From Malacoraja senta (Eukaryota): 64,000 nt of DNA. How positions within the stretch are numbered: position 1 is the first letter of the stretch; the number at the start of each line of letters is the position of its first letter. The notes beneath the pieces are model-generated. The model saw nothing but the letters and a program-made list of their open reading frames with translations, searched no databases and was not told the origin of the DNA. The stretch spans positions 9,114,001-9,178,000 of the forward strand of contig CM075994.1 in NCBI GenBank assembly GCA_038087875.1, in the 5' to 3' direction. The position numbers and the translations under genes are program-made. This document shows, piece after piece, positions 1 through 51,476 of this stretch.

Positions 1-1420
1 CGGGGAATTACAGACCAGTTAGTCTAACATCGGTAGTGGGGAAACTACTAGAGTCAGTTATTAAAGATGGGATAGCAGCACATTTGGAAAGTGGTGAAAT
101 CATTGGACAAAGTCAGCATGGATTTACGAAAGGTAAATCGTGTCTGACGCATCTTATATAATTTTTCGAGGATGTAACTAGTAGAGTGGATAGGGGAGAA
201 CCAGTGGATGTGTTGTATCTGGACTTTCAGAAGGCTTTCGACAAGGTACCACAAAAGAGATTAGGATACAAACTTAAATCACACGGTATTGGGAGTTCAG
301 TATTGATGTGGATAGAGAACTGGCTGGCAAACAGGAAGAAAAGAGTAGGAGTAAACGGATCCTTTTCACAATGGCAGGCAGTGACTAGTGGGGTACCGCA
401 AGGCTCAGTGCTGGGACCCCAGCTATTTACAATTTATATTAATGATCTGGACGAGGGAATTGAAAGCAACATCTCCAAGTTTGCGGATGACACTAAGCTG
501 GGGGGCAGTGTTAGCTGTGAGGAGGATGCTAGGAGACTGCAAGGTGACTTGGATAGGCTGGGTGAGTGGGCAGATGTTTGGCAGATGCAGTATAATGTGG
601 ATAAATGTGAGGTTATCCACTTTGGTGGCAAAAACGGGAAGGCAGACTATTATCTAAATGGTGGCCGATTAGGAAATGGGGAGATGCAGCGAGACCTGGG
701 TGTCATGGTACACCACTCATTGAAAGTAGGCATGCAGGTGGTATGTTGGCCTTCATAGCAAGCGAATGGTATGTTGGCCTTCAGAGCAAGAGGATTTGAG
801 TATAGGAGCAGGGAGGTTCCACTGCAGTTGTACAGGGTCTTGGTGAGACCACACCTGGAGTATTGCGTACAGTTTTGATCTCCAAATCTGAGGAAGGACA
901 TTATAGCCATAGAGGGAGTGCAAAGAAGGTTCACCAGACTGATTCCTGGGATGTCAGGACTTTCATATGAAGAAAGACTGGATAGACTTGGCTTATACTC
1001 GCTAGAATTTAGGAGATTGAGAGGGGATCTTATAGAAGCGTACACAATTCTTATGGGGTTGGACAGGCTAGATGCAGGAAGATTGTTCCCGGTGTTGGGG
1101 AAGTCCAGGACAAGGGGTCACAGCTTAAGGATAAGGGGGAAATCCTTTAAGACCGAGATGAGGAAAAACGTTTTCACACAGAGAGTGGTGAATCTCTGGA
1201 ACTCTCTGCCACAGAGGGTAGTTGAGGCCAGTTCATTGGCTATATTTAAGAGGGAGTTAGATGTGGCCCTTGTGGCTAAAGGGATCAGGGGGTATGGAGA
1301 GAAGGCAGGTACGGGATACTGAGTTGGATGATCAGCCATGATCATATTGAATGGCGGTGCAGGCTCGAAGGGCCGAATGGCCTACTCCTGCACCTATTTT
1401 CTACGTATCTATGTATCTAT
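1..1420 (+). mobile_element. CR1-clade LINE, young subfamily, 3' part (RT C-terminus and tail); continues left of the window
   Basis: LDFQKAFDKV, GVPQGSVLGP, FADDTKL and HLEYCVQFW motifs; ends in (ATCTATGT)n-type tail; near-identical to 34909-36323. Confidence 0.95.
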
Positions 1421-3455
1421 GTTAGGGATAGAATAAAACTAAAAGGAAAGATGTATAACACAGCAAAGTGTAGCCGGAAGCCAGTGGATTGGGAAAATTT
1501 CATATGACAACAGAAGGAAACAAAGCGGGCAATACGGGCTGAAAAGTTGAAGTACGAGGGAAAGCTGGCCAGGAATATAGAGAAGGACAGTAAAAGCTTC
1601 TTTACATATGTTAAGGGAAAAAGAATAGCAAAGTCAAATGTGGGTCCCTTGAAGGCAGACACGGGTGAAATTATTTGGGTAACAAGGAAATGGCAGAAGA
1701 ATTGAACAGGTACTTCGGATCTGTCTTCACTAAGGAAGACATAAACAATCTGCCAGATGTACTGGGGGACAGAGGATCTAAGGGGGTAGAGGAACTGAAA
1801 TAAATTTTCATTAGTCGAGAAATGCCATTTGGTAGGCTAAAGGGACTGAAGGATGATAAATCCCCTGCGCCTGTAGGTCTGCATCCCAGGGTCCTCAGGG
1901 AGGTGGCTGTAGAAATAGTAGACGCATTGGCGATCATTTTCCAATGTTCAAAAGATTCAGGATCAGTTCCTGTGGATTGGAGGATAGCTAATGTTATTCC
2001 ACTTTTCAAGAAAGGAGCGAGAGAGAAAACGGGGAATTACAGACCAGTTAGCCTGATTTCGGTGGTGGGAAAGATGCTGGAGTCAATTATTAAAGAGGTA
2101 ATAATGGGGCATTTGGATAGCAGTAAAATGATTAGTCCAAGTCAACATGGATTTATGAAACGGAAATCATGCTTGACCAATCTTCTGAATTTTTTAAGGA
2201 TGTGACAAGTAAAATGGATGAAGGGGAGCCTGTGGATGTAGTGTATCTAGACTTTCAGAAAGCCTTTGATGAGGTCCCGCACGGGAGACTGGTGACTAAA
2301 ATTAGAGCACATGGTATAGGGGGTAGGATGTTGACGTGGATAGAAACTTGGTTGACAGACAGGAAGCAAAGAGTAGGAGTGACAGGCAGAATGGCAGGCA
2401 GTGGAGAGTGGAGTGTCGCAAGGCTCGGTGTTGGGGCCGCAACTGTTTACCATATATATTAATGATTTGGAACAGGGAATTAGGAGCAACACTAGCAAGT
2501 TTGCGGATGACACAAAGCTGGGTGGCAGTGTGAACTGTGAAGAGGATGTCAGGAGGTTGCAGGGTGACATGGACAGGTTGAGTGAGTGGGCAGATGCGTG
2601 GCAGATGCGTGGCAGATGCGTGGCAGATGCAGTATAATATAGATAAAGTTGAGGTTATCCACTTTGGCGGCACAATAGAAGGGGGCAGAATATTATCTCA
2701 ATGTGGTTAGGGTAGGTAAGGGGGAGTTGCTGCGAGACCTGGGTGTCCTTGTACACCGGTCACTGAAAGATGGCGTGCATGTACAACAGGCAGTGAAGAA
2801 AGCTAATGGAATGTTGGCCTTCATAACAAGATGATTTCAATATAGAAAGAGGTTCTTCTGCAGTTGTACGGGGCTCTGGTAAGACCACATCTGGAGTATT
2901 GTGTACAGTTTTGGTCTCCGAATTTGAGGAAGGACATCCTTGTGATTGAGGTAGTGCAGCGTAGGTTCACGAGATTGATCCCTGGGATGGCGGGACTGTC
3001 ATATGAGGAAAAATTGAAACGACTAGGCTTGTATTCACTGGAGTTTAGAAGTATGGGGGGATCTTACAGAAACATATAAAATTATAAAAGGACTGGACAA
3101 GCTAGATGCAGGAAAAATGTTCCCAATGTAGGGCCAGTCCAGAACCAGGAACCACAGTCTTAGAATAGAGGGGAGGCCATTTAGGACTGGGGTGAGAAAA
3201 TAAAATTCACCCAGAAAGTTGTGAATTTGTGAAATTCCCTGCCACAGAGGGCAGTGGAGGGCAAATCACTGGATGAATTTAAGAGATAGTTAGATAGAGC
3301 TCTAGGTGTTAGTGGAATCAAGGGATATGGGGAGAAGGCAGGCACGGGTTATTGATTGGGGATGATCAACCATTATCACAATGAATGGCGGTGCTGGCTC
3401 GAACGGTCGAAAGGCCTCCTCCTGCACGTATTTTCTATGTTTCTATGTTTCTATG
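1421..3455 (+). mobile_element. Older degenerate CR1 LINE fragment
   Basis: Frameshifted RT ORFs (1822-2205, 2169-2462, 2401-2637, 2864-3079); (TTCTATGT)n tail. Paralogue at 32441-32628 plus 36324-37708. Confidence 0.9.
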
Positions 3456-3459
3456 GTTT

Positions 3460-3739
3460 GGAGAACAGCGCGGAAACAGGCCATTCGGCCCACCGAGTCC
3501 GAACAATACACTACACACATTAGGGGCAATTTACAGAAATAATGAGCCAATTAACCTACAAGCCTGTATGTCTTTGGAGTGTGGGATGAAACCGAAGATC
3601 TTGGAGCCATCCTACGCAGGTCACGTTGAGAACGTACAAACTCCGTACAGACAGTAACCGTAGTCGGGATTGAACCTGCGTTTCTGCCGCTGAAAGCGCT
3701 GTAAGCCAGCAACTCTACCGCAGCGCCACCCTGCCGCCC
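3460..3739 (-). mobile_element. HE1-like tRNA-derived V-SINE
   Basis: tRNA-like head with A/B boxes followed by V-domain core (GTACGTTCTC...TTCATCCCACACTCCAAAGAC on minus strand). Other copies near 11790-12082, 17925-18215, 19940-20160, 21660-22078, 41147-41440, 49930-50225, 51525-51820. Confidence 0.8.
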
Positions 3740-3984
3740 TAATGATAATTTATTCGCACATGTACCTTGGTGCAGTGAAATGTTTTGTTCTGCATACAAT
3801 CCGGTAATAACCATGTTATCCAGAGTTGCTGCTGCTCCTTTGGGATGTTGTGATCTTTTACTTGTATATATTCCTTGGGTTAATTTCAAACAATATTTCA
3901 GATTGTTTGTTAACACATTGCGGAGATTGGAAATGTTTTATCTGAGATCGGGTTGCAGTGAACGCCATGGAGAGGAGCTTTAGG

Positions 3985-4520
3985 ATTTACAAGACCAATA
4001 TCTGAGGAAGGATGTGCTGGCTCTGGAGAGGGTCCAGAGGAGATTTAAAAGAATGATCCCAGGATTGAGTGGGTTAACATATGATGAGTGTTTGACGGCA
4101 CTGGGCCTGTAACAGCAGGAATTTAGAAGGATGAGAGGGAATCTCATTGAAATTTACTGAATAGTGAACGGCTTGGATAGAGTGGATGTGGAGAGGATCA
4201 TTCCACTAACGAGAAAGTCTAGGACTCGAGGTCATAGTCTCAGAATTAAAGGACGTCCTTTTCGGGAGGAGATGGGGAGGAATTTATTTAGTCAGAGGGT
4301 GGTGAATCTGTGGAATTCTTTGCCACAGTAGGTTGTGGAAGCCAAACCAGTGGATATTTGTAAGGCAAAGATAGATACATAGATTCTTGATTAATACAAG
4401 TGTTAGAGGAAAGGGGAGAATGCAGGAGAATGGGGTTAGGAGGGAGAGATAGATCAGCCATGATTGAATGGCGGAGTAGAATTGATGGACCAATTCTGCT
4501 CCTATCACTTATGACCTATT
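3985..4520 (+). mobile_element. CR1 3' fragment (paralogues about 22320-22860 and 41690-42235)
   Basis: LALERVQRRFxRMIPG-type C-terminal ORF2 sequence and CR1 3' UTR. Confidence 0.8.
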
Positions 4521-6049
4521 GGCTTTATGATCTTATGACCTTATGAGACACATACGTGTATATGCCGGTAGAATGGACATCCATGTAACAGAAGAGACTT
4601 ATTAAAGTTTCGGATACCGCAGGACTTTTACTAACTTTCCAGCGCACATCATTCAGCGTTAAATTGTTGTCATTATTTAAAGAACATGAACAAGATCCTA
4701 TTAATAAAGCGTTCATTATTGGTCTATTATTACAACCTGTAATAATCACTGTCAAATCACACCATTGTGGCGCCATCTTGTGGCCGAGACACCTTGGTGT
4801 CGAAACTTTGTTTGTCGAGCTCGAACTATCGCCTGAACTGACGTGATCTGACATTAGAAAATTCAGAGTTCAATATTGGGTTCTAAGCTACCGAGATGGA
4901 GTATGAGGTCATGTTTATCCAATGGCCTCACTCAGGCAATGGAGGAAACCCAGGGCAGAGGGGTCGGTGTGGGAATGGGAAGGGGAGTTTAAATGGTTTG
5001 AAACCGGGAGATCCATCAGGCAAATGGAACGCAAGTGTACTGTCCGAAGATAGATACAAAAAGCTGGAGTAACTGCGCGGGTCAGGCAGCATCTCTGGAA
5101 AAAAGGAATGGTTGACGTTTCGGGTAAAGACGCTTCGTCAGAGGGTATCGTCGCTTGGGGAAGTGCATCAGGATCTGGGAGTCCTTGGTCATCAGTCAAT
5201 GAAAGTGGGCATGCAGGTGCAGTGGGCGGTGAAGAAAGCGAATGGCATGTTGGCCCTTATTACAAGAGGAGTTGAGTATTGGAGCAAAGAGGTCCTTCTG
5301 CAATTATATAGGGCCCTAGTGAGACCACACCTGGAGTATTGTGTACAGTTTTGGTCCCCTAATTTGAGGACGGACATTCTTGCTATTGAGGGAGTGCAGC
5401 GTAGGTTTACAAGGTTAGTTCCTGGGATTGCAGGACTGTCATATGCTGAGAGAATGGAGCAGCTGGGCTTGTATAATGTAGACCAAATATTGTCTATTGT
5501 TTATTGTCTATTGGCCTGCGTTTGAAATGTAACCACTCTGAGTTGAATCTGTTGTTGCCAGGAACGAACAAACAAGAAGGCGGTGTGGAGTTTTAATGAG
5601 TGTAAGATTTCAGAAATTACATTACCACAAATGGGTGTTGACCCACAACAGTATCAGCACAGCTGACTGAGCTAAAGTTGATTCGGTAATGGGTTTGCTT
5701 TTCTTGGTTTGATCTGCTGGATGAGTTGATTCAAATATGTAGGGAGTTCAACACTTATGGTCTGAGAAATTAAAATAGATACATTAGTATACCACAAGCA
5801 CATGCAGAAAAACATTAATAGCATTGAACACAATTCACTTCAATTATTGTTATTAAAGTTCATGTCAAGTATGTGTCCACATAGCTCCTAGTCATAGAGT
5901 CATCGAGTGATGCAGGGTGGAAACAGGCTCTTCAGGCCCACTTTCCCCACACCGACCAACATGTCCCAGCTAAACCCACCTGCCTATATCCCTCCAAATG
6001 TCCTATCCATGTACCATCCAACTTCTGTATGAGTTCCTTATTTCTGGCC

Positions 6050-6500: not shown

Positions 6501-6529
6501 TGAAATGTATTTCAGATTAGTTCATTAAG

Positions 6530-6890
6530 ATAAGTTAATTTAAGTTAAGTTACGTTTAATTTAGTTTAGTTTAGTATAATTTCGTTTGCTTTGCTTTGGA
6601 TTGGTTTAGTTAAGTTTAGTTACGATTGTTCTAGTTTAGTTAAGTTTAGTTTTTAGTTTAGAGTATTTTAGTTTCGTTTAGAGTATTTAAGTTTTGTTTA
6701 GTTTAGGGTAGTTTAATTTTGTTTAGTTTGGTTTGGTTTGGTTAAGTTTAGTTACATTTAGTTGAGATTTTGTTGTTTAGTTAAGTTTAATTTAATTTAG
6801 TCTCGTAAGAGTTTCGTTTAGGGTATTTTATTTTATTTTAGTGTAGTTTTGTTTAGTTTAGTTTAGTTTAATTTAGTTTAGTTTGTAAGA
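6530..6890. repeat. Degenerate (TTTAG)n microsatellite (paralogue 45875-46228 and 47401-47557)
   Basis: Direct reading of pentamer repeats. Confidence 0.9.
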
Positions 6891-7012: not shown

Positions 7013-7170
7013 TTAGGCTTCTTTTCTCCGACTGGCAAATCCACAAGACTCCCATGAGCAGATGATGAAGACTATTATAACGTTGATCACAATGAACGTT
7101 GCAAGTTTCACTCCCATTATCAGCAGCTGCCAACGTAATCTCCACGCGGGGCTTTCTAAAAAGCTCCGGG
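7013..7170 (-). CDS. NCR3: Exon 4: stalk, transmembrane segment with Lys, short cytoplasmic tail
   Basis: Acceptor ttttattcctgcag. Phase-1 reading (P)RSFLESPAWRLRWQLLIMGVKLATFIVINVIIVFIICSWESCGFASRRKEA-TAA. Confidence 0.85.
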
Positions 7171-10100
7171 CTGCAGGAATAAAACATCAAGTTCACAAAT
7201 TACATTCCCAGTTTCTTTCTGTTTCCATCCATTCTTATACACCAAAATGTTCCCACTATCATTCTAACCGAAGACAAATTCATTTGCCTGAAAAAGAACA
7301 ACAGTTGTGGGAACCTTTACACAGAATACAAAGTGCTGGAGTAAGTCAACGGGTCAGGCAGCATCTGTGGAGAACATGGATAGGCGACGTTTCAGGTCGG
7401 CACCCTTCTTCAGCATCTCACAATGTCACCTATCCATGTTCTCCAGACATGCTACCTCGCCCGCTGATTTACTCCAACACTTTGCGTATTTTTGTTTGAA
7501 ACCCGCATCTGCAGTTCCTTTTATCTCCACCCTGATTGCTTGAGGGAATAGCCGAAGCAGCAAATGCCTCTGAGAGCCAGTAGCCTGGCCTCAATGCTGA
7601 CTGCCGGTGTGGAGTTTGCACGTTCTCCATATGATTGCCTGCCTGCGTTTCCCCTGGGCGTTACAGCTTCCTCTCTCATCCCAAAGATAGGTAATGAACA
7701 GCTGTAAATTACCCCTGATATATGGAGGAGTCGGAGTGAGCTTATCGTGCATGTGAATTAAGAGGGAACTGGATTGCTCTTCGATTGAAAGAATGGTCGG
7801 TGTATGGAGCAAGCTGCCAGAGGAGGTCGTTGAGGCTGGGACTATCGCATCGGTTAAGAAGCAGTTGGACAGATACATGGATAGGACAGGTTTCGATGGA
7901 TATGGACCAAGCGCACGCAGGTGGGACTCGTATCGCCGGGACATGTTGGCCGGTGTGGGCAATAGACAATAGACAATAGGTGCAGGAGTAGGCCGTTCGG
8001 CCCTTCGAGCCAGAACCGCCATACACTGTGATCATAGCTGATCATCCCCAATCAGTTGCCCTTTCATTTCGTCTCCCCATATCTCTTGACTCCGCTATCT
8101 TTAAGAGCTCCATCTAACTCTCTCTTGAAAGCATCCAGCGAATAGGCCTCCACTGCCTTCTGAGGCAGATAATTCCAGAGATTCACAACTTACTGGGTGA
8201 AAAAGGGTTTCCTCCTAAGTCCTAAATGGCCTACCCCTTATTCTTAAACTGGGGCCCCTGGTTCCTACATATATAATGAATTTATATGCCTAAATCTGAA
8301 CTGACAAAGCTCCGTTGTTGAGGCGTGTGGTGGCCGGTGTTAAGTTTTTTTTTATAACAGTAAAGACAAAGTTAAGATAACGAAAATACTTACGTGTGAC
8401 TGTGATTTCTGTGCCGTTGCTATTATATATTTCCCCTGTGAAAACAACCACTCGGCAGTAATACTTTCCTGTATCGTTCATTTTGAGGTCAGTGATTTCG
8501 ATGGATTCTTTTAGAATTCCCGGTGAACTATTTTTCAGAACGCGACCATAATAGTCTCCGTTCGTGTTGGAAACGGCACGAGTTTCCACATCTTTGTACC
8601 AACTAATGTGCCCAATTGTCTTGCCAACAAATGTACAATTAATCCGCACAGTCCCGCCTTCAGTAACGTTGACATTAGACGGTGATTGTATAACAGTTCC
8701 TGAAACCAGAAATAATCTTTTAGTTTCGGCGCTGGCCTTTCGGCCACCCAGTCAATGCCATTCATTATACCTATCTTGACAATCTCATTTACTCGCGACA
8801 ATCCGGGTTCGATCCTGACCTCGGATGCTGTCTGTCTGTGTGCAGTTTGCACATATTGCCTGCGTTTTTCCTGTGCGCTCTTGCGTCCTCCCTCAACCCC
8901 TCTCATCCCAAAGACGTGCGTCCTAGATACACAGATACATAGAAAATAGGTGCAGGAGTAGGCCATTCGACCCTTCGAGCCTGCACCGCCATTCAATATG
9001 ATCTTGGCTGATCATCCAACTCAGTACCCCGTACCTGCCTTCTCTCCCTCTTAAATGTAGCCAATGAACTGGCCTCAACTGAGTTGGATGATACCCCCTG
9101 ATCCCTTTAGCCACAAGGGCCACATCTAACTCCCTCTTAAATATAGCCAATGAACTGGCCTCAACTACCCTCTGTCAGAGAGTTCCAGAGATTCACCACT
9201 CTCTGTGTGAAATGGTTTTTTCTCATCTCGGTCTTAAAGGATTTCCCCCTTATCCTTAAGCTGTGACCCCTTGTCCTGGACTTCCCCAACATCGCGAACA
9301 ATCTTCGTGCATCTAGCCTGTCCCACCCCATAAGAATATTGTACGTTTCTATAAGATCCCCTCTCAATCTCCTAAATTCTAGCGAGTATAAGCCAAGTCT
9401 ATCCAGTCTTTCTTCATATGAAAGTCATGACATCCCAGGAATCAGTGTGGTGAACCTTCTCTGCACTCCCTCTGTGGCTATAATGTCCTTCCTCAGATTT
9501 GGAGACCAAAACTGGACGCAATACTCCAGGTGTGGTCTCACCAAGACCCTGTAAAACTGTAGCAGAACCTCTCTGTTCCTATACACAAATTCTTTTTCTA
9601 TGAAAGCCAACATACCATGCGCTTTCTTCACAGCCTGCTGCACCTGCATGCCTACTTTCAATGACTGGTGTACCATGACACCCAGGTCTCGCTGCATCTC
9701 CCCTTTTCCTAATCGGCCACCATTTAGATAATAGTCTGCATTCCTGTTTTTGCCAGCAAAGTGGATAACCTCACATTTATCCACATTATACTGCATCTGC
9801 CAAACATTTGCCCACTCACCCAGCCTATCCAAGTCACCTTGCAGTCTCCTACCATCCTCCTCACAGCTAACACTGCCCTCCAGCTTAGTGTCATCCGCAA
9901 ACTTGGAGATGTTGCCTTCAATTCCCTCATCCAGTTCATTAATATAAATTGTAAATAGCTGGGGTCCCAGCACTGAGCCTTGCGGTACCCCACTAGTCAC
10001 TGCCTGCTATTGTGAAAAGGACCCGTTTACTCCTACTCTTTGCTTCCTGTTTGCCAGCCAGTTCTCTATCCACATCAATACTGAACCCCCAATACCGTGT

Positions 10101-13100
10101 GCTTTAAGTTTGTATACTAATCTCTTATGTGGGACCTTGTCGAAAGCCTTCTGAAAGTCCAGATACAACACATCCACTGGTTCTCCCCTATCCACTCTAC
10201 TAGTTACATCCTCCAAAAATTCTATAAGATTCGTCACACATGATTTACCTTTCGTAAATCCATGCTGACTTTGTCCAATGATTTCACCACTTTACAAATG
10301 TGCTGCTATCCCATCTTTAATAACTGACTCTAGCAGTTTCCCCCCCTACCGATGTTAGACTAACTGGTCTGTAATTCCCCGTTTTCTCTCTGCCTCCCTT
10401 CTTAAAAAGTGGGGTTACGTTTGCTACCCTCCAATCCTAAGGAACTACTCCAGAACCTAAAGAGTTTTGAAAAATTATCACTAATGCATCCACTATTTCT
10501 GGAGCTACTTCATTAACTACTCTGGGATGCAGCCTATCTGGCCCTGGTGATTTATCGACCTTTAATCCATTCAATTTACCCAACACCACTTCCCGACTAA
10601 CCTGGATTTCACTCAGTTCCTCCATCTCCTTTGACCCGCGGTCCCCTGCTATTTCCGGGTGATTATTTATGTCTTCCTTAGTGAAGACGGAACCAAAGTA
10701 GTTATTCAATTGGTCCGCCATATCCTTGTTCCCCATGATCAATTCACCTGTTTCTGACTGCAAGGGACCTACATTTGTTTTAACTAATCTCTTTCTCTTC
10801 ACATATCTATAAAACCGTTTGCAGTCAGTTTTTATGTTCCCTGCCAGTTTTCTTTCATAATCTATTTTCCCTTTCCTAATTAAGCCCTTTGTCCTCCTCT
10901 GCTGGTCTCTGAATATCTCCCAGTCCTCTGGTATGCTGCTTTTTCTGGCTAATTTGTATGCATCATCTTTTGCTTTGATACTATCCCTGATTTCCCTTGT
11001 TATCCACGGATGCACTACCTTCCCTGATTTATTCTTTTGCCAAACTGGGATGAACAATTTTTGTAGTTCATCCATGCAGTCTTTAAATGCCTTCCATTGC
11101 ATATCCACCGTCAACCCTTTTAGAACTAATTGCCAGTTAATCTTGGCCAATTCACGTCTCATACCCTCAAAGTTACCTTTCTCTAAGTTCAGAACCGTTG
11201 TTTCTGAATTAACAATGTCACTCTCCATCCTAATGAAGAACTCAACCATATTATGGTCACTCTTGCCCAAGGGGCACGCACAACAAGACTGCTAACTAAC
11301 CCTTCCTCATTACTCAATACCCAGTCTAGAATAGCCTGCTCTCTCGTTGGTTCCTCTACATGTTGGTTTAGATAACTATCCCGCATACATTCCAAGAAAT
11401 CCTCCTCCTCAGCACCCCTGCCAATTTGATTCACCCAATCTATATGTAGATTGAAGTCACCCATTATAACTGTTTTGCCTTTGTTGCACGCATTTCTAAT
11501 TTCCTGTTTGATGCCATCCCCAACTTCACTACTACTGCTAGGTGGCCTGTAAACAACACCCACCAGCGTTTTCTGCCCTTTAGTGTCTCGCAGCTCTACC
11601 CATACCTGATGGGTAATTAGCAGCTGAAAATTTCCCTTGGTATATGGAGGAGTCGGAGTGACCGTAGCGTAATTGTGAATTTAGAGGGAACTAGATTGCT
11701 CTTCGATGGAAAGAAATGTCTTCCTTGCCTCTTTCTATAAATAGGGGATTTCGCCCACAATGGACAATTGTCGTGTTGGGTTAGTTTAGTTTAGAGATAC
11801 AGTGCGGATACCGGCCCTTCGGCCCACCGAGTCCGCTGCGAGGAACGATACTCGCAAAATAACGCTAATCTGCGCACACCAGGGACAATGTACATTTTTC
11901 ACCGAGGCTAATTTCCCTACAAACCAGTACGTCTTTGGAGTGTGGGTGTAAAACGGAGCTCCCGCTGAAAACCCACGCAGGGAGAACGTAAACTCCGTAC
12001 AGACAGAACCCGTAGTCAGGATCGAACCCGGGATCCCTGGTGCTGTAAGGCAGCAAATCTACCGCCGCGCCACCGTGTTGCCCCTCTCTTCAGCTTTCCT
12101 GAACCCACTGTACTTTCCTTACAGTTCCTCCATCTTCCCCGCCAGGTTATGGTCTTATGTTTGTTATTCCGATTTGTGCTGAAAAATTCATGGATGTTGC
12201 TGCGTCGAAAGCGACCATGAAATCGGCACGGATTATTTCAAATTACGCACCGATCCTCTCTTTGTCCTGTGCACTGATGCACAGTCTCTTGCCCAGAGTA
12301 GGGGAATCGAGGATCAGAAGACAGCGGTTCAAGGTGAAGGGGAAAAGATTTAGTAGGAATCCGAGCGGTTTATTTTCCACAGAGAGAGCGCTCGATGTAT
12401 GGAGAAAGCGGTCAGAGGAGGTCGATGAGGCTCGGACTATCCCATCGTTTAAGAAGGACTTTGGACAGGTACATGGATAGGACAGGTTTCGAGGGATTAT
12501 GGAAAAAGCGCACGCAGGTGGGACTAGTGTCGCTGGGACATTGTTGGCCGGTGTGGGCAACAGACAATAGACAATAAATGCAGAGGTAGGCCACTCGGCC
12601 CTTCGAGCCAGTATCGCCATTCACTGTGATCATGGCAGATCATCCACAATCAGTACCCTGTTCCTGCCTTCTCGCCATATCCCTTGACTCCGCTATCTTT
12701 AAGAACTCTATCTAACTCTCTCTTGAAAGCATCCAGAAAATTGGCCGCCAATTGGTCTCTGAGGCAGAGAATTCCACAGATTTACAACTCTCTGGGTGAA
12801 AAAGTGTTTCCTCATTTCCGTTCTAAATGTCTTACCCCTTATTCTTAAACTGTGTTCCGTGGCTCCTACATATATAATGAATTTCGGTGCCTAAATCTGA
12901 TCTGAGAACGTTTCGTTGTTGAGGCGTGTGGTGGCCGGTGTTCAGAATGGTTTTTAGAACAGTAAAGATACAGTTAATATAACGCATACTTACGTGTGAC
13001 TGTGACTTCTGTGCCGTGGCCATTATATATTTCCGCTGTGAAAACAGTCACTCGGCAGTAATACTTTCCTGCCTCGTTCATTTTGAGGTCAGTGATTTCG

Positions 13101-13391
13101 ATGGATTGTTTTAGAATTCCCGGTGAACTGCTTGTCAGAACGCGGCCATAATAGTCGCCGCTCGTGTTGGAAACGGTACGAGATTCCACGTCTTTGTACC
13201 AACTAATGGCCCCAATTGTCATGCCAACAAATGCACAGTTGAGCCGCACAGTCCCGCCTTCAGTAACTGTGATCTGCGACGGTGATTGCATGATCGATTC
13301 ATCGGATCCAACAGCACCTGAAACCAGAAATCATCTTATAGTTTCGGCGCTGGCCTTTCGGCCCATCCAGTCAATGCCATCCATTACACAT

Positions 13392-13472
<81 letters not shown>

Positions 13473-13701
13473 CTCTCTCCCCTCACCCACCTCCACCTTT
13501 CNNNNNNNNNNNNNNNNNNNNNNNNNNNNNNNNNNNNNNNNNNNNNNNNNNNNNNNNNNNNNNNNNNNNNNNNNNNNNNNNNNNNNNNNNNNNNNNNNNN
13601 NNNNNNNNNNNNNNNNNNNNNNNNNNNNNNNNNNNNNNNTGCGTGTACGTGAACCTACCGGACAAAAACAGCAAGGACCAAGCGACCACACTCCACTGCA
13701 T
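7013..13701 (-). CDS. NCR3: NCR3/NKp30-like Ig-superfamily receptor with two V domains, 276 aa, join(13659-13701, 12994-13317, 8394-8699, 7013-7170)
   Basis: Exon lengths 43+324+306+158 = 831 nt, open to TAA. V domains show TIGAISWYKD, YYGRV, YYCRVTV and GHGTEVTV, paralleling human NKp30 AIGSVTWFRD, FRGRL, YVCRVEV and GNGTRLVV. Symbol means NCR3-like; orthology is not proven. Confidence 0.85.
8394..8699 (-). CDS. NCR3: Exon 3: membrane-proximal VJ-type Ig domain (V2)
   Basis: Acceptor ttctggtttcag, donor gtaagt. TVIQSPSNVNVTEGGTVRINC..W..DTGKYYC..NGTEITVT with canonical Cys-Trp-Cys. Confidence 0.95.
8925..11604 (-). mobile_element. Young CR1 LINE, 5'-truncated within the endonuclease, inserted in the V1-V2 intron
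   Basis: EN and RT ORFs (11189-11563, 10437-11270, 10007-10237, 9425-10000); flanked by CCT/CCT; absent at the paralogous site near 49740. Confidence 0.95.
12994..13317 (-). CDS. NCR3: Exon 2: membrane-distal VJ-type Ig domain (V1)
   Basis: Acceptor ttctggtttcag, donor gtaagt. AVGSDESIMQSPSQITVTEGGTVRLNC..W..EAGKYYC..NGHGTEVTVT. Confidence 0.95.
13396..13480. repeat. (TC)n microsatellite in intron 1
   Basis: Direct reading. Confidence 0.95.
13502..13639. other. Assembly gap (138 N) in intron 1
   Basis: Run of N. Confidence 1.
13659..13701 (-). CDS. NCR3: Exon 1: signal-peptide exon MQWSVVAWSLLFLS(G)
   Basis: AAG-ATG start with A at -3, hydrophobic 14 aa, phase-1 donor gtaggt; joins in frame to AVGS of V1. 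Confidence 0.8.
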
Positions 13702-14004
13702 CTTTGAACGGCTACCTTTAGGCGGAAACAAACACACAAAAAGAGGTCAGGCAGCATCTGCGGAAGACATGGGAAATCCGACTGAATTGAGGTCCAGACC
13801 CGAAACGTCGCCTGTCCATGTTGTCCAGAGATGCCTCCTGACCCGCTGATCTACTCAAGCACTTTTTGTTCTGATGTGCATCCACCAGCCTCTGCAGTTC
13901 CTTGTTCTCACCTCCAGATTCGCTGCCTGACCTGTTGAGTTACTCCAGCACTTTATGTTATTTTATACATCAACCAGCATCTGCAGTTCCTGGTTCTCAG
14001 CTCC

Positions 14005-14368
14005 ACAGTTCACAGATTCTGGTGTTTTGTACGTGGGAACTTATGTGTTTTGTGCGTCTGTCCCCGCGGCCCGGGTGAGGGTGAATGACCCGGTGTGGGT
14101 GTCAGAGTCCGGGGGTCGGAGGGGGGGGGGTGGGGGGGGGTGGGGTGGGCGACGGCTCGGGGCATAGTAATTCGCGTTTAAAACATGGCGGGGGGACACA
14201 CATTCCCTGGCGGGCCGATGACAAGCGTGCATGACAACGAACTATTTTATCTCCTCCCACTCCCCCCCCCCCTTTAACAACAGGAAGCACGTTTTATTTA
14301 TTACCGTCTGGTTGCTTGCGGAACGCACACACGCTCCTACGCACAAAACACCAGAATCTGTGAACTGT
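14005..14368. mobile_element. Unclassified MITE-like element with perfect 26-bp terminal inverted repeats
   Basis: ACAGTTCACAGATTCTGGTGTTTTGT at 14005-14030 and its exact reverse complement at 14343-14368; no clear TSD. Confidence 0.65.
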
Positions 14369-14686
14369 TTTAACCGAAGATGGACACAGAAAGCTGGAGT
14401 AACTTATCGGAACAGGCAGCAACTCTGTAGAGAAGGAATGGGTGACGTTTCGTGTCGAGACCCTTCTTCAGATCTGAAGACTAGATCTGAAGAGTCTTGA
14501 CCCGCAACGCCACCCATTACTTCTCTCCAGAGATGCTGCCTGTCCCACTGAGTCATTCCAGCATTTTGTGTCTATTTTTGGTGTCAGTCCCAGTTTTCTC
14601 AACTGCCGCTCTGGGGGAGAGAGAGAAGGGGGAGAGAGAGAGAGAAGGGAGAGAGAGAAGGGAGAGAGAGAGGGCGGGAGAGAGGG

Positions 14687-14830
14687 NNNNNNNNNNNNNN
14701 NNNNNNNNNNNNNNNNNNNNNNNNNNNNNNNNNNNNNNNNNNNNNNNNNNNNNNNNNNNNNNNNNNNNNNNNNNNNNNNNNNNNNNNNNNNNNNNNNNNN
14801 NNNNNNNNNNNNNNNNNNNNNNNNNNNNNN
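14687..14830. other. Assembly gap (144 N) inside a GA-rich low-complexity tract
   Basis: Run of N. Confidence 1.
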
Positions 14831-32117: not shown

Positions 32118-32628
32118 AGCTATTACAAAATCATTATTTTGTAAAAAATCTCTGGGGGTTAAGCGTTAAGTTCAGAAGCACTCGAGCCCAAACCCTCGTT
32201 TCCAATTGACATAATGGCGAGGTTGCTTCAAGAAGCAGATGTCGAGTTACAACAGAACCACCTGTATATATTGTAGAAACAAGGAACTGCAAATGTAGGT
32301 TTACAAAAAAAACACAAAGTCTGAATACGTGTTCTCACTCGAAACGTTACCTATACAGAGATTCAGCAATCTTTAGTTTAGTTCAGTTGACTTGAGTTTA
32401 GATCAGTTGTGTTTAGTTGGACCAAAAAGGAAGATAGATTCTAAGGGGAGTAGGAAGCAACCGTGGCTGACAGGATAAGTTAGGGATAGAATAAAACTAA
32501 AAGGAAAGATGTATAACACAGCAAAGAGTAGCCGGAAGCCAGAGGATTGGGAAACTTTCATAGGACAACAGAAGGAAACAAAACGGGCAATACGGGCTGA
32601 AAAAATGAAGTACGATGGAAAGCTGGCC

Positions 32629-35600
32629 TAGGGGGTCAGACAGGCGATTCTGTGGACGCAGTCGGGAGACCCGGATGGTAGTTTGCCTCCCTGGTGCCAG
32701 GGTCTGTGATGTGTCTCAACGTGTCCAAGACATCCTGAAAGGGCAGGGAGAGTTGCCCGAAGTCGTGATACATATAGGTACCAATGACATAGGTAAAAAA
32801 AGAGAAGAGGTCCTGAAAGGAGAATTTAGGGAGTTAGGAGGGGAGTTAAAGAGAAGGACAGCAAAGGTAACAATCTCGGGATTACTGCCTGTGCCACGCG
32901 ACAGTGAGAGTAGGAATGGAACGAGGTGGAGGATAAATGCGTGGCTGAAGGACTGGTGCAGAAGGCAGGGATTCAAATTTCTGGATCATTGGGACCTCTT
33001 TTGTGGAAGGTACGACATGTACAAAAAGGATGGGTTGCACTTGAACCTGAGGGGGACCGATATCCTGGCGGGGAGATCTGCAAAGGCTACTGGGGAGACT
33101 TTAAACTAGAATGGTTGGGGGGAGGGACTCAAATAGAGAATGCTATTAGACAGTGTGTGAGGCAGGAGGCAGAGAAGGAAAGCACACAGACCCAACATGT
33201 AGGGGGGAAAGAAGAAAACAATAATAAACAGAGAATAAGAGGTGGTGGGGTTCTTAAATGGGTGAGCAGAGAAACAGAGTGGTGCAAAATGCGGGCGGAA
33301 GCAATAGGTAGCAAGGTGAAAAGTAAAAGTGGCAGGCAGACAAATCCAGGGCAAAAATCAAAAAGAGCCACTTTCCAACATAATTGTATAAGGGGTAAGA
33401 GCGTTGTAAAAACAAGCCTGAAGGCTTTGTGTCTCAATGCAAGGAGCATTCGTAATAAGGTCGATGAGTTGAACGTGCAGATAGCAATTAATGATTATGA
33501 TATAGTTGGGATCACGGAGACATGGCTCCAGGGTGACCAAGGCTGGGAGCTGAACGTCCAGGGATATTCAATATTCAGGAGGGATAGAGAGAAAGGAAAA
33601 GGAGGTGGGGTAGCGTTGCTGGTTAGAGAGGAGATTAACGCAGTGGAAAGGAAGGACATTAGCTTGGAGGATGTGGAATCGGTATGGGTAGAGCTACGAA
33701 ATACTAAGGGGCAGAAAACGCTGGTGGGTGTTGTGTACAGGCCACCTAGCAGTAGTAGTGAAGTTGGGGATGGCATCAAACAGGAAATTAGAAATGCGTG
33801 CAACAAAGGCAAAACAGTTATAATGGGTGACTTCAATCTACATATAGATTGGGTGAATCAAATTGGCAGGGGTGCTGAGGAAGAGGATTTCTTGGAATGT
33901 ATGAGGGATAGTTATCTAAACCAACATGTAGAGGAACCAACGAGAGAGCAGGCTATTCTAGACTGGGTATTGAGTAATGAGGAAGGGTTAGTTAGCAGAC
34001 TTGTTGTGCGTGCCCCCTTGGGCAAGAGTGACCATAATATGGTTGAGTTCTTCATTAGGATGGAGAGTGACATTGTTAATTCAGAAACAACGGTTCTGAA
34101 CTTAAAGAAATGTAACTTTGAGGATATGAGACGTGAATTGGCCAAGATTGACTGGCAATTAGTTCTAAAAGGGTTGACGGTGGATATGCAATGGAAGGCA
34201 TTTAAAGACTGCATGGATGAACTACAAAAAATGTTCATCCCAGTTTGGCAAAATAATGAATCAGGGAAGGTAGTGCATCCGTGGATAACAAGGGAAATCA
34301 GGGATAGTATCAAAGCAAAAGATGTTGCGTACAAATTAGCCAGAAAAAGCAGCATACCAGAGGACTGGGAGAAATTCAGAGACCAGCAGAGGAGGACAGA
34401 GGGCTTAATTAGGAAAGGGAAAATAGATTATGAAAGGAAACTGGCAGGGAACATAAAAACTGACTGCAAAAGTTTTTATAGATATGTGAAGAGAAAGAGA
34501 TTAGTTAAAACAAATGTAGGTCCCTTGCAGTCAGAAACAGGTGAATTGATCATGGGGAACGAGGATATGGCGGACCAATTGAATAACTACTTTGGCTCCG
34601 TCTTCACTTAGGAAGACATAAATAATCTGCCGGAAATAGCAGGGGGCCGCGGGTCAAAGGAGATGGAGGAACTGAGTGAAATCCAGGTTAGTCGGGAAGT
34701 GGTGTTGGGTAAATTGAATGGATTAAAGGCCGATAAATCACTAGGGCCAGATAGGCTGCATCCCAGAGTACTTAAGGAAGTTGCTCCAGAAATAGTGGAT
34801 GCATTAGCGATAATTTTTCAAAACTCTTTGGATTCTGGAGTAGTTCCTGAGGATTGGAGGGTAGCAAACGTAACCCCACTTTTTAAGAAGGGAGGGAGAG
34901 AGAAAACGGGGAATTACAGACCAGTTAGTCTAACATCGGTAGTGGGGAAACTGCTAGAGTCAGTTATTAAAGATGGGATAGCAGCACATTTGGAAAGTGG
35001 TGAAATCATTGGACAAAGTCAGCATGGATTTACGAAAGGTAAATCGTGTCTGACGAACCTTATAGAATTTTTCGAGGATGTAACTAGTAGAGTGGATAGG
35101 GGAGAACCAGTGGATGTGTTGTATCTGGACTTTCAGAAGGCTTTCGACAAGGTACCACATAAGAGATTAGGATACAAACTTAAATCACACGGTATTGGGG
35201 GTTCAGTATTGATGTGGATAGAGAACTGGCTGGCAAACAGGAAGCAAAGAGTAGGAGTAAACAGGTCCTTTTCACAATGGCAGGCAGTGACTAGTGGGGT
35301 ACCGCAAGGCTCAGTGCTGGGACCCCAGCTATTTACAATTTATATTAATGATCTGAACGAGGGAATTGAAAGCAACATCTCCAAGTTTGCGGATGACACA
35401 AAGCTGGGGGGCAGTGTTAGCTGTGAGGAGGATGCTAGGAGACTGCAAGTTGACTTGGATAGGCTGGGTGAGTGGGCAAATGTTTGGCAGATGCAGTATA
35501 ATGTGGATAAATGTGAGGTTGTCCACTTTGGTGGCAAAAACGGGAAGGCAGACTATTATCTAAATGGTGGCCGATTAGGAAATGGGGAGGTGCAGCGAGA

Positions 35601-36323
35601 CCTGGGTGTCATGGTACACCAGTCATTGAAAGTAGGCATGCAGGTGCAGCAGGCAGTGAAGAAAGCGAATGGTATGTTGGCCTTCATAGCAAGAGGATTT
35701 GAGTATAGGAGCAGGGAGGTTCTACTGCAGTTGTACAGGGTCTTGGTGAGACCACACCTGGAGTATTGCGTACAGTTTTGGTCTCCAAATCTGAGGAAGG
35801 ACATTATAGCCATAGAGGGAGTGCAGAGAAGGTTCACCAGACTGATTCCTGGGATGTCAGGACTTTCATATGAAGAAAGACTGGATAGACTTGGCTTATA
35901 CTCGCTAGAATTTAGGAGATTGAGAGGGGATCTTATAGAAACGTACAAAATTCTTATGGGGTTGGACAGGCTAGATGCAGGAAGATTGTTCCCGATGTTG
36001 GGGAAGTCCAGGACAAGGGGTCACAGCTTAAGGATAAGGGGGAAATCCTTTAAGACCGAGATGAGGAAAAACTTTTTCACACAGAGAGTGGTGAATCTCT
36101 GGAACTCTCTGCCACAGAGGGTAGTTGACGCCAGTTCATTGGCTATATTTAAGAGGGAGTTAGATGTGGCCCTTGTGGCTAAAGGGATCAGGGGGTATGG
36201 AGAGAAGGCAGGTACGGGATACTGAGTTGGATGATCAGCCATGATCATATTGAATGGCGGTGCAGGCTCGAAGGGCCGAATGGCCTACTCCTGCACCTAT
36301 TTTCTATGTATCTATGTATCTAT
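32629..36323 (+). mobile_element. Near-complete CR1 LINE: partial ORF1 (SGNH esterase-like) plus ORF2 EN-RT with one nonsense codon
   Basis: ORF1 HIGTND..WCRRQGFKFLDHW..DGLHLN; EN LCLNARS, ITETWL, MGDFN, SDHN; TAG at 34609-34611; 520-aa open RT at 34663-36225; nested in an older CR1. Confidence 0.95.
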
Positions 36324-37708
36324 GAATATAGAGAAGGACAGTAAAAGCTTTTTACATATGTTAAGGGAAAAAGAATAGCAAAGTCAAATGTGAGTCACTT
36401 GAAGGAAGACTCGGGTGAAATTATTATGGGTAACAAGGAAATGGCAGAAGAGTTGTCTTCGGATCTGCCTTCACTAAGGAAGACATAAACAATCTGCCAG
36501 ATGTACTGGAGGACAGAGGATCTAAGGGGGTAGAGGAACTGAAATAAATTTTCATTAGGCGAGAAATGGAATTTGGTAGGCTAAAGGGACTGAAGGATGA
36601 TAAATCCCCTGCGCCTGATGGTCTGCATCCCAGGATCCTCAGGGAGGTGGCTGTAGAAATAGTGGACGCATTGGCGATCATTTTCCAATGTTCAAAAGAT
36701 TCAGGATCAGTGCCTGTGGATTGGAGAATAGCTAATGTTATCCCACTTTTCAAGAAAGGAGCGAGAGAGAAAACGGGGAATTACAGACCAGTTAGCCTGA
36801 CTTCGGTGGTGGGAAAGATGCTGGAGTCAATTATTAAAGAGGTAATAATGGGGCATTCGGATAGCAGTAAAAGATTTAGTTCAACTCAACATTGATTTAT
36901 GAAACGGAAATCATGCTTGACTAATCTTCTCAATTTGTTGAGGATGTGACAAGCCTTTGATAAAGTCCCGCACGGGAGACTGGTGACTAAAATTGGAGCG
37001 CATGGTATTGGGGGTGGGGTGTTGATATGGATAGAAAATTGGTTGGCAGACAGGAAGCAAAGAGTAGGAGTGAACGGGTCCTTTTCAGAATGGCAGGCAG
37101 TGGCGAGTGGAGTGCCGCAAGGCTCGGTGTTGGGGCCGCAACTGTTTACCATATATATTAATGATTTGGAAGAGGGCATTAGGAGCAACACTAGCAAGTT
37201 TGCGGATCACACAAAGCTGGGTGGCAGTGTGAACTGTGAAGAGGATGTTAGGAAGTTGGAGGGTGACCTGGAGAGGTTGCGTGAGTGGGCAGATGCGTGG
37301 CAGATGCAGTATACTATAGATAAATGTGAGGTTATCCACTTTGGCGGTAAAAACAAGGGGGCAGATTATTATTTCAATGGGGTTAGGTTAGGTAAGGGGG
37401 AGGTACAGAGAGACCTGGGTGTCCTTGTACACCAGTCACTGAAAGTTGGCGTGCAGGTACAACAGGCAGTGAAGAAAGCTAATGGAATGTTGGCCTTCAT
37501 AACAAGAGGTTTTCAGTATAGGAGTAAAGAGGTTCTTCTGCAGTTGTATAGGGCTCTGGTAAGACCACATCTGGAGTATTGTGTTCAGTTTTGGTCTCCG
37601 AATTTGAGGAAGGACATCCGTGTGATTGAGGCAGTGCAGCGTAGGTTCACGAGATTGATCCCTGGGATGGCGGGAATGTCATATTAAAAAAGGCAGGCAC
37701 GGGTTATT

Positions 37709-40700: not shown

Positions 40701-41034
40701 GTTCAGGGAGACCACGCCGCTGCGCTTCACACAGGGCCTGGCTGGGAGCCCGTGTGCCGACAGACCTGTGACCGGGAGGATAGACCGGAGAAAGGCATAC
40801 CTGGGCTCGAGGGACCGCCGGTGGATGGAGCGGTGGGGCCGACCAGGTCCGTCCTCACAGCTCTGGGCGAGGTAAGCAGATGTTAAACGGGCGCGGGCGA
40901 GGTTCTTCAGCCTTACCAGGGCGTCCGCCCATTTACTCCGCCTCCAGGCTCGGCGCGTGCGGCGGCCGCCACAAGGTCGAGCCCATATATCTATCGGGAG
41001 CCGAGCGAGGAGCGAACGGTAAGTGAAATCTTAC
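37709..41034 (-). mobile_element. L2-clade LINE, close to full length, frameshifted
   Basis: EN (LINARS, ITETWL, ILGDFN, LSDH) at 39756-40730; RT ([29 protein letters not shown]); (GACTT)n tail; absent in unit 1 near 3340. Confidence 0.9.
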
Positions 41035-50600: not shown

Positions 50601-51276
50601 ACTTTGGACAGGTACATGGATAGGAGAGGTTTCGAGGGATATGGACCAAGCGCACGCAGGTGGGACTAGTGTCGCTGGGACATTGTTGGCCGGTGTGAGC
50701 AACAGACAATAGACAATAAATGCAGAGGTAGGCCATTCGGCCCTTCGAGTCAGTACCGCCATTCACTGTGATCATGGCAGATCATCCACAATCAGTAGCC
50801 CGTCCCTGCCTCCCCATATCCCTTGACTCCGCTATCTTTAAGAGCTCTATCTAACTCTCTCTTGAAAGCATCCAGTAAATTGGCCTCCACCGCCTTCTGA
50901 GGCAGAGAATTCACAGATTTACAACTCTCTGGGTGAAAAAGTGTTTCCTCATCTCCGTTCTAAATATCTTACCCCTTATTCTTAAACGGTGTCCCCTGGC
51001 TCCTACATATATAATGAATTTCTGTGCCTAAATCTGATCTGACAACGTTTCGTTGTTGAGGCGTGTGGTGGCCGGTGTTAAGAATGGTTTTTAGAACAGT
51101 AAAGATAAAGTTAAAATAACGCAAACTTACGTGTGACTGTGACTTCTGTGCCGTGGCCATTATATATTTCCCCTGTGAAAGCAGTCACTCGGCAGTAATA
51201 CTTTCCTGTATTGTTCATTTTGAGGTCAGTGATTTCGATGGATTATTTTAGAATTCCCATTGGACTATTTTTCAAA
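47685..51276 (-). pseudogene. NCR3: Second NCR3-like two-V gene, apparently disabled: V1 partial 51131-51276, V2 49214-49520, TM 47685-47824; leader not visible
   Basis: V1 has in-frame TAA at 51243-51245. V2 is 307 nt with a 1-nt insertion at 49384. TM exon is open: (R)PAWGLRWQLLVMGVKLATFILINVIIVFIIRSWESCGFASRRKEA. Visible splice sites are intact. Confidence 0.75.
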
Positions 51277-51476
51277 NNNNNNNNNNNNNNNNNNNNNNNN
51301 NNNNNNNNNNNNNNNNNNNNNNNNNNNNNNNNNNNNNNNNNNNNNNNNNNNNNNNNNNNNNNNNNNNNNNNNNNNNNNNNNNNNNNNNNNNNNNNNNNNN
51401 NNNNNNNNNNNNNNNNNNNNNNNNNNNNNNNNNNNNNNNNNNNNNNNNNNNNNNNNNNNNNNNNNNNNNNNNNNNN
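51277..51476. other. Assembly gap (200 N) cutting V1 of the second gene
   Basis: Run of N. Confidence 1.

Follow-up and report, generated by a model that had tools for sequence, protein, structure and literature searches.

An apparently intact, predicted NKp30-like receptor gene with tandem V exons in a skate

NKp30 (NCR3) is one of very few natural killer (NK) cell receptors conserved from cartilaginous fish to humans, and it is used to illustrate the non-rearranging VJ domains that are a possible origin of antigen receptors. In mammals its extracellular part is a single V domain. A stretch of 64,000 nucleotides from the skate Malacoraja senta (NCBI GenBank assembly GCA_038087875.1, contig CM075994.1, positions 9,114,001 to 9,178,000 of the forward strand), referred to here as the window, carries at positions 7,013 to 13,701 a gene, gene A, in which two V exons stand between the leader exon and the transmembrane (TM) exon. 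An earlier note on this DNA, made from its letters alone, had proposed that gene A is a domain-duplicated NCR3 subtype. The question that the locus raises is whether both V exons belong to one NKp30-like receptor or whether the pair is to be explained otherwise, as two neighboring genes, as alternative exons, or as a copy in decay. The analysis described below indicates that the gene is real and apparently intact, and that its V-to-V-to-TM layout is present in spliced form in a related species. Numbering is that of the window, and all exons, introns and duplicated units of the receptor genes lie on its minus strand.

Gene structure and the two V domains

Direct reading of the reverse complement and scripted splicing join four exons with GT-AG borders, all of whose junctions are in phase 1, into an open reading frame (ORF) of 831 nt that encodes 276 amino acids. 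Exon 1 (13701-13659) begins with the ATG at 13701, encodes the signal peptide (MQWSVVAWSLLFLS, followed by the first base of a glycine codon), and ends at the donor GTAGGT. Exon 2 (13317-12994; 108 codons) encodes V1, the membrane-distal VJ-type V-set domain, and exon 3 (8699-8394; 102 codons) encodes V2, its membrane-proximal counterpart. Both are phase 1-1 exons that are entered through the same acceptor, TTTCAG (TTTCTGGTTTCAG), and left through the same donor, GTAAGT. They are separated by intron 2 (8700-12993), which measures 4.3 kb. Exon 4 (7170-7013), which follows the acceptor CCTGCAG (TTATTCCTGCAG), supplies a stalk of 14 residues (PRSFLESPAWRLRW), a TM helix containing a lysine (QLLIMGVKLATFIVINVIIVFIICSW; TM segment QLLIMGVKLATFIV), a tail of about a dozen residues that includes no tyrosine (ESCGFASRRKEA), and the stop codon TAA. 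A second AG lies 15 nt downstream of this acceptor, and its use would move the start of the TM exon to 7155 and yield a protein of 271 amino acids with the frame unchanged. The TM acceptor used in the transcript contigs described below is of the 7170 type.

V1 and V2 each match the Pfam V-set model from end to end (E 4.4e-11 and 1e-12, respectively), and the AlphaFold model of V1 is a V-type beta sandwich with a predicted local distance difference test score (pLDDT) of 84. The two domains share 87.9% of their DNA and 77% of their protein sequence. Both exons contain, in a single uninterrupted piece, the V region together with a J-like G strand, with no split of the kind associated with recombination signal sequences. 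The exon-encoded G strand of V1 (YNGHGTEVTVT) preserves the G-x-G bulge; in that of V2 (YNSNGTEITVT) the first bulge glycine is replaced by serine, which creates an NGT sequon. The canonical motif FG(K/N/T)GTEV is present in the relatives included in our family alignment. V1 carries one N-glycosylation sequon and V2 carries five, and the V2 exon differs from that of V1 by an 18-nt deletion at its 5′ end, just after the homologous acceptor, that removes the residues GSDESI. Gene A as a whole retains 276 of 276 codons, all splice sites, the Cys-Trp-Cys cores of both domains, and the conserved TM motif.

We also considered whether V1 and V2 might belong to two separate single-V genes. This arrangement was rejected because tblastn reveals no leader-like or TM-like exon between them, and one case that the earlier note had named as its own refutation, in which the exons of two single-V genes are hidden in the gaps, fails on the same ground. 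The four phase-1 exons, the open type-I protein of 276 residues, and the J-like G strand in each V domain that had been described there are borne out by the reading above. Its count of 78 identities between V1 and V2 also stands, although the aligned length is 101 residues rather than the 98 that it gave.

An assembly gap (13502-13639) lies inside intron 1, where it adjoins a (CT)n microsatellite at ~13396-13470. No reading frame crosses it and no coding sequence is interrupted by it, but its actual length is not fixed by the assembly and it could hide further sequence. The leader exon resides on a piece of 1,047 nt (13640-14686) flanked by this gap and by the next (14687-14830). The linkage between leader and V1 rests on scaffolding and on homology to the leader-to-V junction of Rhinoraja longicauda XP_078271940.1, in which the leader MQWGVVAWYFLLLS is spliced to a V domain beginning AVGSDES (so that MQWGVVAWYFLLLS is followed by GAVGSDES); the leader in the window is 71% identical to it. 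Directly upstream of the leader exon, at 13824-14001, are two adjacent 89-nt copies resembling a short interspersed nuclear element, which are 78% alike and have related copies at 7328-7413 and 14386-14471. Just downstream of the 3′ end of the gene, at 6515-6885, is an AT-rich satellite composed of units of ~5 nt (GTTTA/GTTAA-like), for which the repeat finder reports a periodicity of 10 nt.

Family assignment and spliced transcripts in a relative

To find relatives of the predicted protein, HMMER was run exhaustively against 1.84 billion representatives, and protein names were taken from cluster look-ups. The nearest database protein is Rhinoraja XP_078271940.1, which is 71% identical and 196 amino acids long, and which has one V domain, the same leader, and the same lysine-bearing TM segment. 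Proteins from Hemitrygon and Hypanus, two of which bear the NCBI name 'natural cytotoxicity triggering receptor 3-like', follow at 51-57% identity, and an NCR3-like protein from Heterodontus is 39-43% identical. This batoid and shark family comprises activating forms, which have a lysine-bearing TM segment of the form WQLxxxGVKLAxF, and inhibitory forms, which have long tails with tyrosines resembling those of immunoreceptor tyrosine-based inhibitory motifs (ITIMs). The TM motif is common to the window gene and to proteins of Rhinoraja, Hemitrygon, Hypanus, and Pristiophorus. Gene A combines it with the other features of the activating subtype, namely the leader and the V framework elements QSP..TVTEGGT..L.C, WYKD, GRV, and DTGKYYC. 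The charged TM residue, which is a lysine here and an arginine in mammals, and the short tail lacking tyrosine would suit a receptor of the adaptor-coupled activating type. Whereas NCR3 has a single extracellular V domain, gene A has two V exons in one ORF. Exons of the inhibitory (ITIM) type were searched for in the 64-kb window and were not found. The window protein was absent from the results of protein word-index searches, in which the query P0001 returned only itself and its neighbor, the family alignment returned eight matches, and the V2 exon alone returned none.

A profile built from 11 V domains of the family was then compared with all PDB sequences. The best single-domain chain was human NKp30 (57 bits, E 1.4e-14, over a full-length stretch), and other single V chains, including a nanobody, T-cell receptor (TCR)-alpha, and SIRP-alpha, scored ~42-44 bits. 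The entries ranked above NKp30 are multi-domain constructs that reach at most 28 bits per domain where this value is shown. The corresponding search with a single sequence was less clear, with NKp30 (E 1.5e-7) appearing among matches to TCRs and single-chain variable fragments. Foldseek searches of Swiss-Prot and PDB ranked CD8-beta, TCR-alpha, NCR3, and immunoglobulin (Ig)-kappa about equally, and the ESM Atlas returned only generic V-set clusters that do not separate NCR3 from the V domains of TCR, CD8, and Ig. In a tree of 46 V domains, which includes no mammalian NCR3, TCR, or Ig rows, V1 and V2 group with the Rhinoraja V domains, which are single-V batoid NCR3-like sequences, inside the batoid set. 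The tandem-VJ proteins designated SIRP-beta-like or 'turtle-like' form separate supported groups, and the SIRP-like clade is long-branched.

On the basis of these comparisons, we assign gene A to the batoid and shark set of NCR3 (NKp30)-like activating and inhibitory receptors. The same membership had been suggested in the earlier note, and both the NCBI names of the close relatives and the lead of NKp30 among single-domain PDB matches agree with it. The phylogeny proposed there as a check places V1 and V2, among the rows of the 46-domain tree, with batoid NCR3-like domains and apart from SIRP-like ones. The Rhinoraja locus has one V exon flanked by leader and TM exons, and a partner gene of the inhibitory type on the opposite strand. 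At the end of the V exon of Rhinoraja longicauda (CM130181.1, L001:17424-17468), the last codons and the donor are duplicated in tandem (33 nt). The NCBI model takes the second of the two donors, which adds MSTAVTVTVTR, and the neighboring inhibitory gene has a similar extra segment, ISTAVTVT.

Evidence that a second V exon is joined to the first in RNA comes from sequencing run X4, which derives from a related species that is ~91% identical in the exon. In this run there is no depth in the flanking introns, and contigs end exactly at exon borders. Reads placed on 7080-13079 were swamped by intron repeats and yielded no exon joints, whereas placement on the V2 exon alone (8380-8715) produced clean loose ends. 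A contig of 449 nt consists of 45 nt of V-exon 3′ end, a V2-type exon (8393-8699), and 97 nt from the start of a TM exon, joined at the predicted sites. Thirty of its 45 upstream letters are shown, among which 29 match the 3′ end of V1 (12994-13023) and 26 match the 3′ end of the V2 exon of gene A. At their start, its 97 downstream letters resemble the TM exon as entered through a 7170-type acceptor. This contig is a V-to-V-to-TM spliced molecule of the related species.

Two further X4 contigs reveal other joints. In one, a V-exon 3′ end is joined directly to the start of the TM exon, and the V exon from which it comes is not discernible. In the other, a V-exon 3′ end is joined to GTGCTGTTGGATCCGAT, whose 15 unaligned letters, GCTGTTGGATCCGAT, match 13301-13315 in the 5′ region of V1 at 15 of 15 positions. 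The two letters that precede GCTGTTGGATCCGAT fit 13316-13317, placing the junction exactly at the start of the V1 exon. A V1-type exon can therefore be internal in the species that supplied X4. The examination of RNA across the exon junctions that the earlier note had called for yields V-to-V-to-TM splicing in a relative.

Origin of the second V exon

The V exon was copied as part of a unit of ~1 kb. Copy 1 (12396-13396) contains the V1 exon and its flanks, and copy 2 (7797-8777) contains the V2 exon with ~600 bp of downstream and ~80 bp of upstream intron. The two copies lie ~4.6 kb apart and are 84-86% identical in their intron flanks and 88-90% identical in the exon. An assembly artefact, a haplotig, or a collapsed repeat was considered as the source of this pair and rejected, because the copies, flanks included, differ by 12-15% and are too diverged for such an origin, and because the same layout recurs in a second gene copy. 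Zero-mismatch DNA contigs from run X3 span the V2 exon together with its intron borders.

The second gene copy, paralogue B (47685-51276), repeats the V-V-TM layout in the form of a pseudogene. The gap at 51277-51476 truncates its first V exon, V1′ (51276-51131), which also contains an in-frame TAA at a position where gene A has CAA or GAA. In V2′ (49520-49214) the frame is disrupted by an insertion of 1 nt. Its TM exon (47824-47685) remains open but is without 15-18 nt that are present at the start of the gene A TM exon. A leader exon for paralogue B was looked for and was not found in the window. Paralogue B is colinear with gene A over TM, V2, and V1, with 87-93% identity, and the 2.7-kb repeat found in intron 2 of gene A is absent from it.

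Identities among these exons indicate the order in which the duplications took place. The V2 exons of A and B are 94-95% identical and the V1 exons are 93% identical with flanks, as opposed to 85-88% between V1 and V2. Like exons of the two genes are thus closer than V1 is to V2, and therefore exon duplication preceded duplication of the whole two-V gene. By these sequence comparisons, the two-V design is older than the duplication that separated genes A and B. The nucleotide identity of 88% between V1 and V2 also compares with only 80-83% between either exon and the Rhinoraja V exons. The V-exon duplication is therefore recent: it occurred before the split from the X4 species and probably after the divergence from the Rhinoraja genes. 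Ratios of nonsynonymous to synonymous substitution rates (dN/dS) are 1.06 for V1 against V2, 0.95 for V1 against Rhinoraja, and 0.78 for the V2 exon of gene A against that of paralogue B. Values of ~1 are typical of NK-receptor ectodomains.

Apart from genes A and B, the window contains only repeats of the long interspersed nuclear element (LINE) type. Remains of LINE-type retrotransposons at 1-6000 and 32600-40800 include ORFs with Exo_endo_phos and RVT_1 domains and show strong GC skew, and such remains take up the greater part of the interval between genes A and B. The 2.7-kb insertion in intron 2 of gene A (~8929-11605) is an interspersed repeat with very high depth in all sequencing runs. 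It includes an ORF of 277 amino acids on the minus strand (10437-11270) that has no Pfam match.

Interpretation and comparison with known systems

We consider it reasonably probable, at about 0.6, that gene A is an intact skate NCR3-like receptor gene whose ectodomain was doubled by a ~1-kb tandem duplication of the V exon, and that its product includes both V domains and is coupled to an adaptor. The duplication would have copied a single VJ-type V exon, and inclusion of both copies in the mRNA is expected because these symmetrical phase 1-1 exons share the strong acceptor TTTCTGGTTTCAG and the donor GTAAGT. The resulting protein would comprise a signal peptide, V1, V2, a short stalk, a TM helix with lysine, and a short tail free of tyrosine. 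By analogy with NKp30 and activating KIR, the TM lysine may pair with a TM aspartate of an adaptor bearing an immunoreceptor tyrosine-based activation motif (ITAM), such as a DAP12-, FcR-gamma-, or CD3-zeta-like protein, and recruitment of this adaptor might enable the receptor to activate NK-like or other leukocytes. V1, which is distal, has one glycan site, and keeps its G-x-G bulge, would most likely be the main ligand-binding domain. V2, with five glycan sites and a degenerate bulge, would more likely act mainly as a glycosylated spacer or as a second contact domain. If NKp30 is a guide, the ligand would most likely be a B7H6-like molecule. The preservation of codons, splice sites, Cys-Trp-Cys cores, and TM motif, together with expression of the same layout in a relative, argues for function.

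Several observations weigh against this interpretation. The neighboring copy B is dead, carrying both a stop codon and a frameshift, and only one V exon separates leader from TM in the gene for the nearest database protein, that of Rhinoraja. Runs X2 and X3 contain the exons but continue into the introns, as DNA would, and the spliced evidence comes only from the relative represented by X4. In such relatives a third V domain or a different order of exons may occur, and an exon could be concealed by the intron 1 gap. A dN/dS of about 1 cannot demonstrate selection on V2 or tell a functional V2 from one that is drifting, and the adaptor, ligand, and domain roles are inferences by analogy only.

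How the two V exons are used bears on two rival explanations, both of which we regard as unlikely. V1 and V2 might be cassette or mutually exclusive exons that give rise mainly to single-V isoforms with alternative binding domains, the two-V form being a minor product. Skipping of either phase 1-1 V exon would preserve the frame, most family members, the nearest relative included, are single-V, and X4 also contains V-to-TM contigs in which the V exon is indeterminate. Such exon choice is nonetheless difficult to reconcile with the identical, strong splice sites of the two exons, with the depth of the V-to-V2-to-TM contig in the relative, which is similar to that of other contigs, and with the survival of the two-V layout through a whole-gene duplication. 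A different departure from the model, and one that we consider about as improbable, is that gene A contains at least three V exons, with an additional one concealed in the gap between leader and V1, in which case the 276-residue model would be incomplete. The X4 contig in which the 3′ end of a V exon runs into the start of a V1-type exon (GTGCTGTTGGATCCGAT, with GCTGTTGGATCCGAT matching at all 15 positions) speaks for such a gene. In Rhinoraja 7 kb of intron separate leader and V, compared with ~340 nt plus the gap in the window, where the leader is confined to a short piece with a gap on either side. Against an additional exon, however, the Rhinoraja leader splices straight to a V1-type AVGSDES start, paralogue B has only two V exons in its readable part, and the X4 junction may derive from another paralogue.

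Two other possibilities concern the nature of the gene itself, and we judge each of them slightly less probable than those just discussed. Gene A could be a silent, decaying copy in a cluster that evolves by birth and death, with its ORF still open only for want of time. A dN/dS of about 1, the stop and frameshift in the sister copy, the 2.7-kb repeat inserted in intron 2, and the origin of the expression evidence in a relative rather than in the window species would all suit a gene on this course. On the other hand, 276 codons, four pairs of splice sites, both Cys/Trp cores, and the TM motif have remained intact despite 12% divergence, and the relative expresses the same layout. Moreover, dN/dS values of ~1 are also obtained between presumably working genes of different species and are usual for NK receptors. 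Alternatively, the gene may be no relative of NCR3 but a member of some other non-rearranging VJ family, for example one of the elasmobranch SIRP-like or tandem-VJ families. The near-equal Foldseek ranking of CD8-beta, TCR-alpha, NCR3, and Ig-kappa leaves room for this assignment, as do the generic V-set clusters of the Atlas and a tree without mammalian NCR3, TCR, and Ig rows. In the profile search, however, NKp30 is ahead of every other single V chain by at least 13 bits. NCBI names the close relatives NCR3-like, the SIRP-like rows form a separate long-branched clade, and the charged TM residue and short tail fit the NKp30 design.

A broader proposal, which we advance only tentatively and hold to be considerably less probable than an intact, doubled NCR3-like receptor, is that V-domain number in the NKp30-like activating receptors of skates changes through recurrent V-exon duplication, with two here and possibly three in a relative, in parallel with KIR2D and KIR3D of primates. 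The two-V form would then be a working, adaptor-coupled receptor with changed reach or valency toward B7H6-like ligands. The idea that the second domain makes the receptor bivalent or extends its reach is speculation.

What the locus offers is a dated and recent case: one VJ exon became two without loss of frame, the pair persisted when the whole gene was duplicated, and V is spliced to V in a relative. The case shows the ectodomain of this NKp30-like family to be easily altered. The one-V Rhinoraja gene and the two-V gene of the window form a natural pair for examining the effect of a second V domain on ligand binding. The architecture is useful for comparative immunology and is unsurprising given the frequency with which domain number changes in such families. 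Its practical value lies mainly in annotation: multi-V relatives are filed under misleading names, and the window gene is not among the database proteins searched.

Comparison with mammalian NKp30/NCR3 (PDB 3NOI, 3PV6, 6YJP, 9FWW) reveals a common plan, in which a single exon encodes the V region and a J-like G strand, the topology is type I, the TM segment contains a positive residue, and the tail is short and lacks signaling tyrosines. NKp30 differs in having one V domain where the window gene has two, in an identity of only about 23-31%, and in the position of its charged residue, an arginine near the outer leaflet, whereas the lysine of the window gene lies deeper in the helix. Closer counterparts are the paired 'NCR3-like' receptors of batoids and sharks, represented by Rhinoraja XP_078271940.1 and LOC144602684, Hemitrygon XP_072892294.1, XP_072920818.1, and XP_072920858.1, Hypanus XP_059827209.1, and Heterodontus XP_067865303.1. 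Their V domains are 51-71% identical to those of the window gene and they have the same leader; the activating forms share the lysine-bearing TM segment, and their partners have ITIM tails. All of them, however, are single-V.

Receptors with more than one V domain are represented in public databases as well, where they are known only as computer gene predictions. A sawshark protein (Pristiophorus UPI00398F42BF) combines two V domains with the same WQLxxxGVKLAxF lysine TM motif. Other examples include Chiloscyllium XP_043533794.1, with two V domains, and Heterodontus XP_067865770-5, with three. Two-V and three-V predictions occur in bamboo shark, horn shark, and catshark, and two-V predictions occur in newt and geckos. 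In Polypterus, predictions with two to four V domains (XP_039626092.1, KAG2469052.1) lie beside AIF1 and PRRC2A, the neighborhood that NCR3 occupies in the human major histocompatibility complex class III region. At the KAG2469052.1 locus of Polypterus senegalus (GCA_016835505.1), several multi-V V-set genes stand directly before AIF1 and PRRC2A (BAT2_N), and one annotation fuses them to PRRC2A. The predicted multi-V relatives resemble the window gene in having tandem germline VJ domains and no C domains, but they are only 31-38% identical to its V domains and go by unrelated names (pIgR-like, SIRP-beta-like, turtle-like). Most of these duplications come out as independent and lineage-specific in the tree of 46 V domains. 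The domain-duplicated subtype envisaged in the earlier note is thus upheld insofar as two VJ domains arose by tandem duplication, and its novelty is smaller than was implied there: what is new is a two-V architecture within a known, fast-evolving receptor family for which multi-V NKp30-like predictions are already in public catalogues.

Families that are not homologous at this level behave in a comparable manner. KIR2D/KIR3D, LILR, SIRP, and NITR form fast-evolving clusters of paired activating and inhibitory receptors in which domain number shifts by exon duplication and loss, and in their activating forms a TM lysine or arginine binds an ITAM adaptor. They differ from the window gene in their domain composition, which is C2/I-set in KIR and LILR, V plus C1 in SIRP, and V plus I in NITR.

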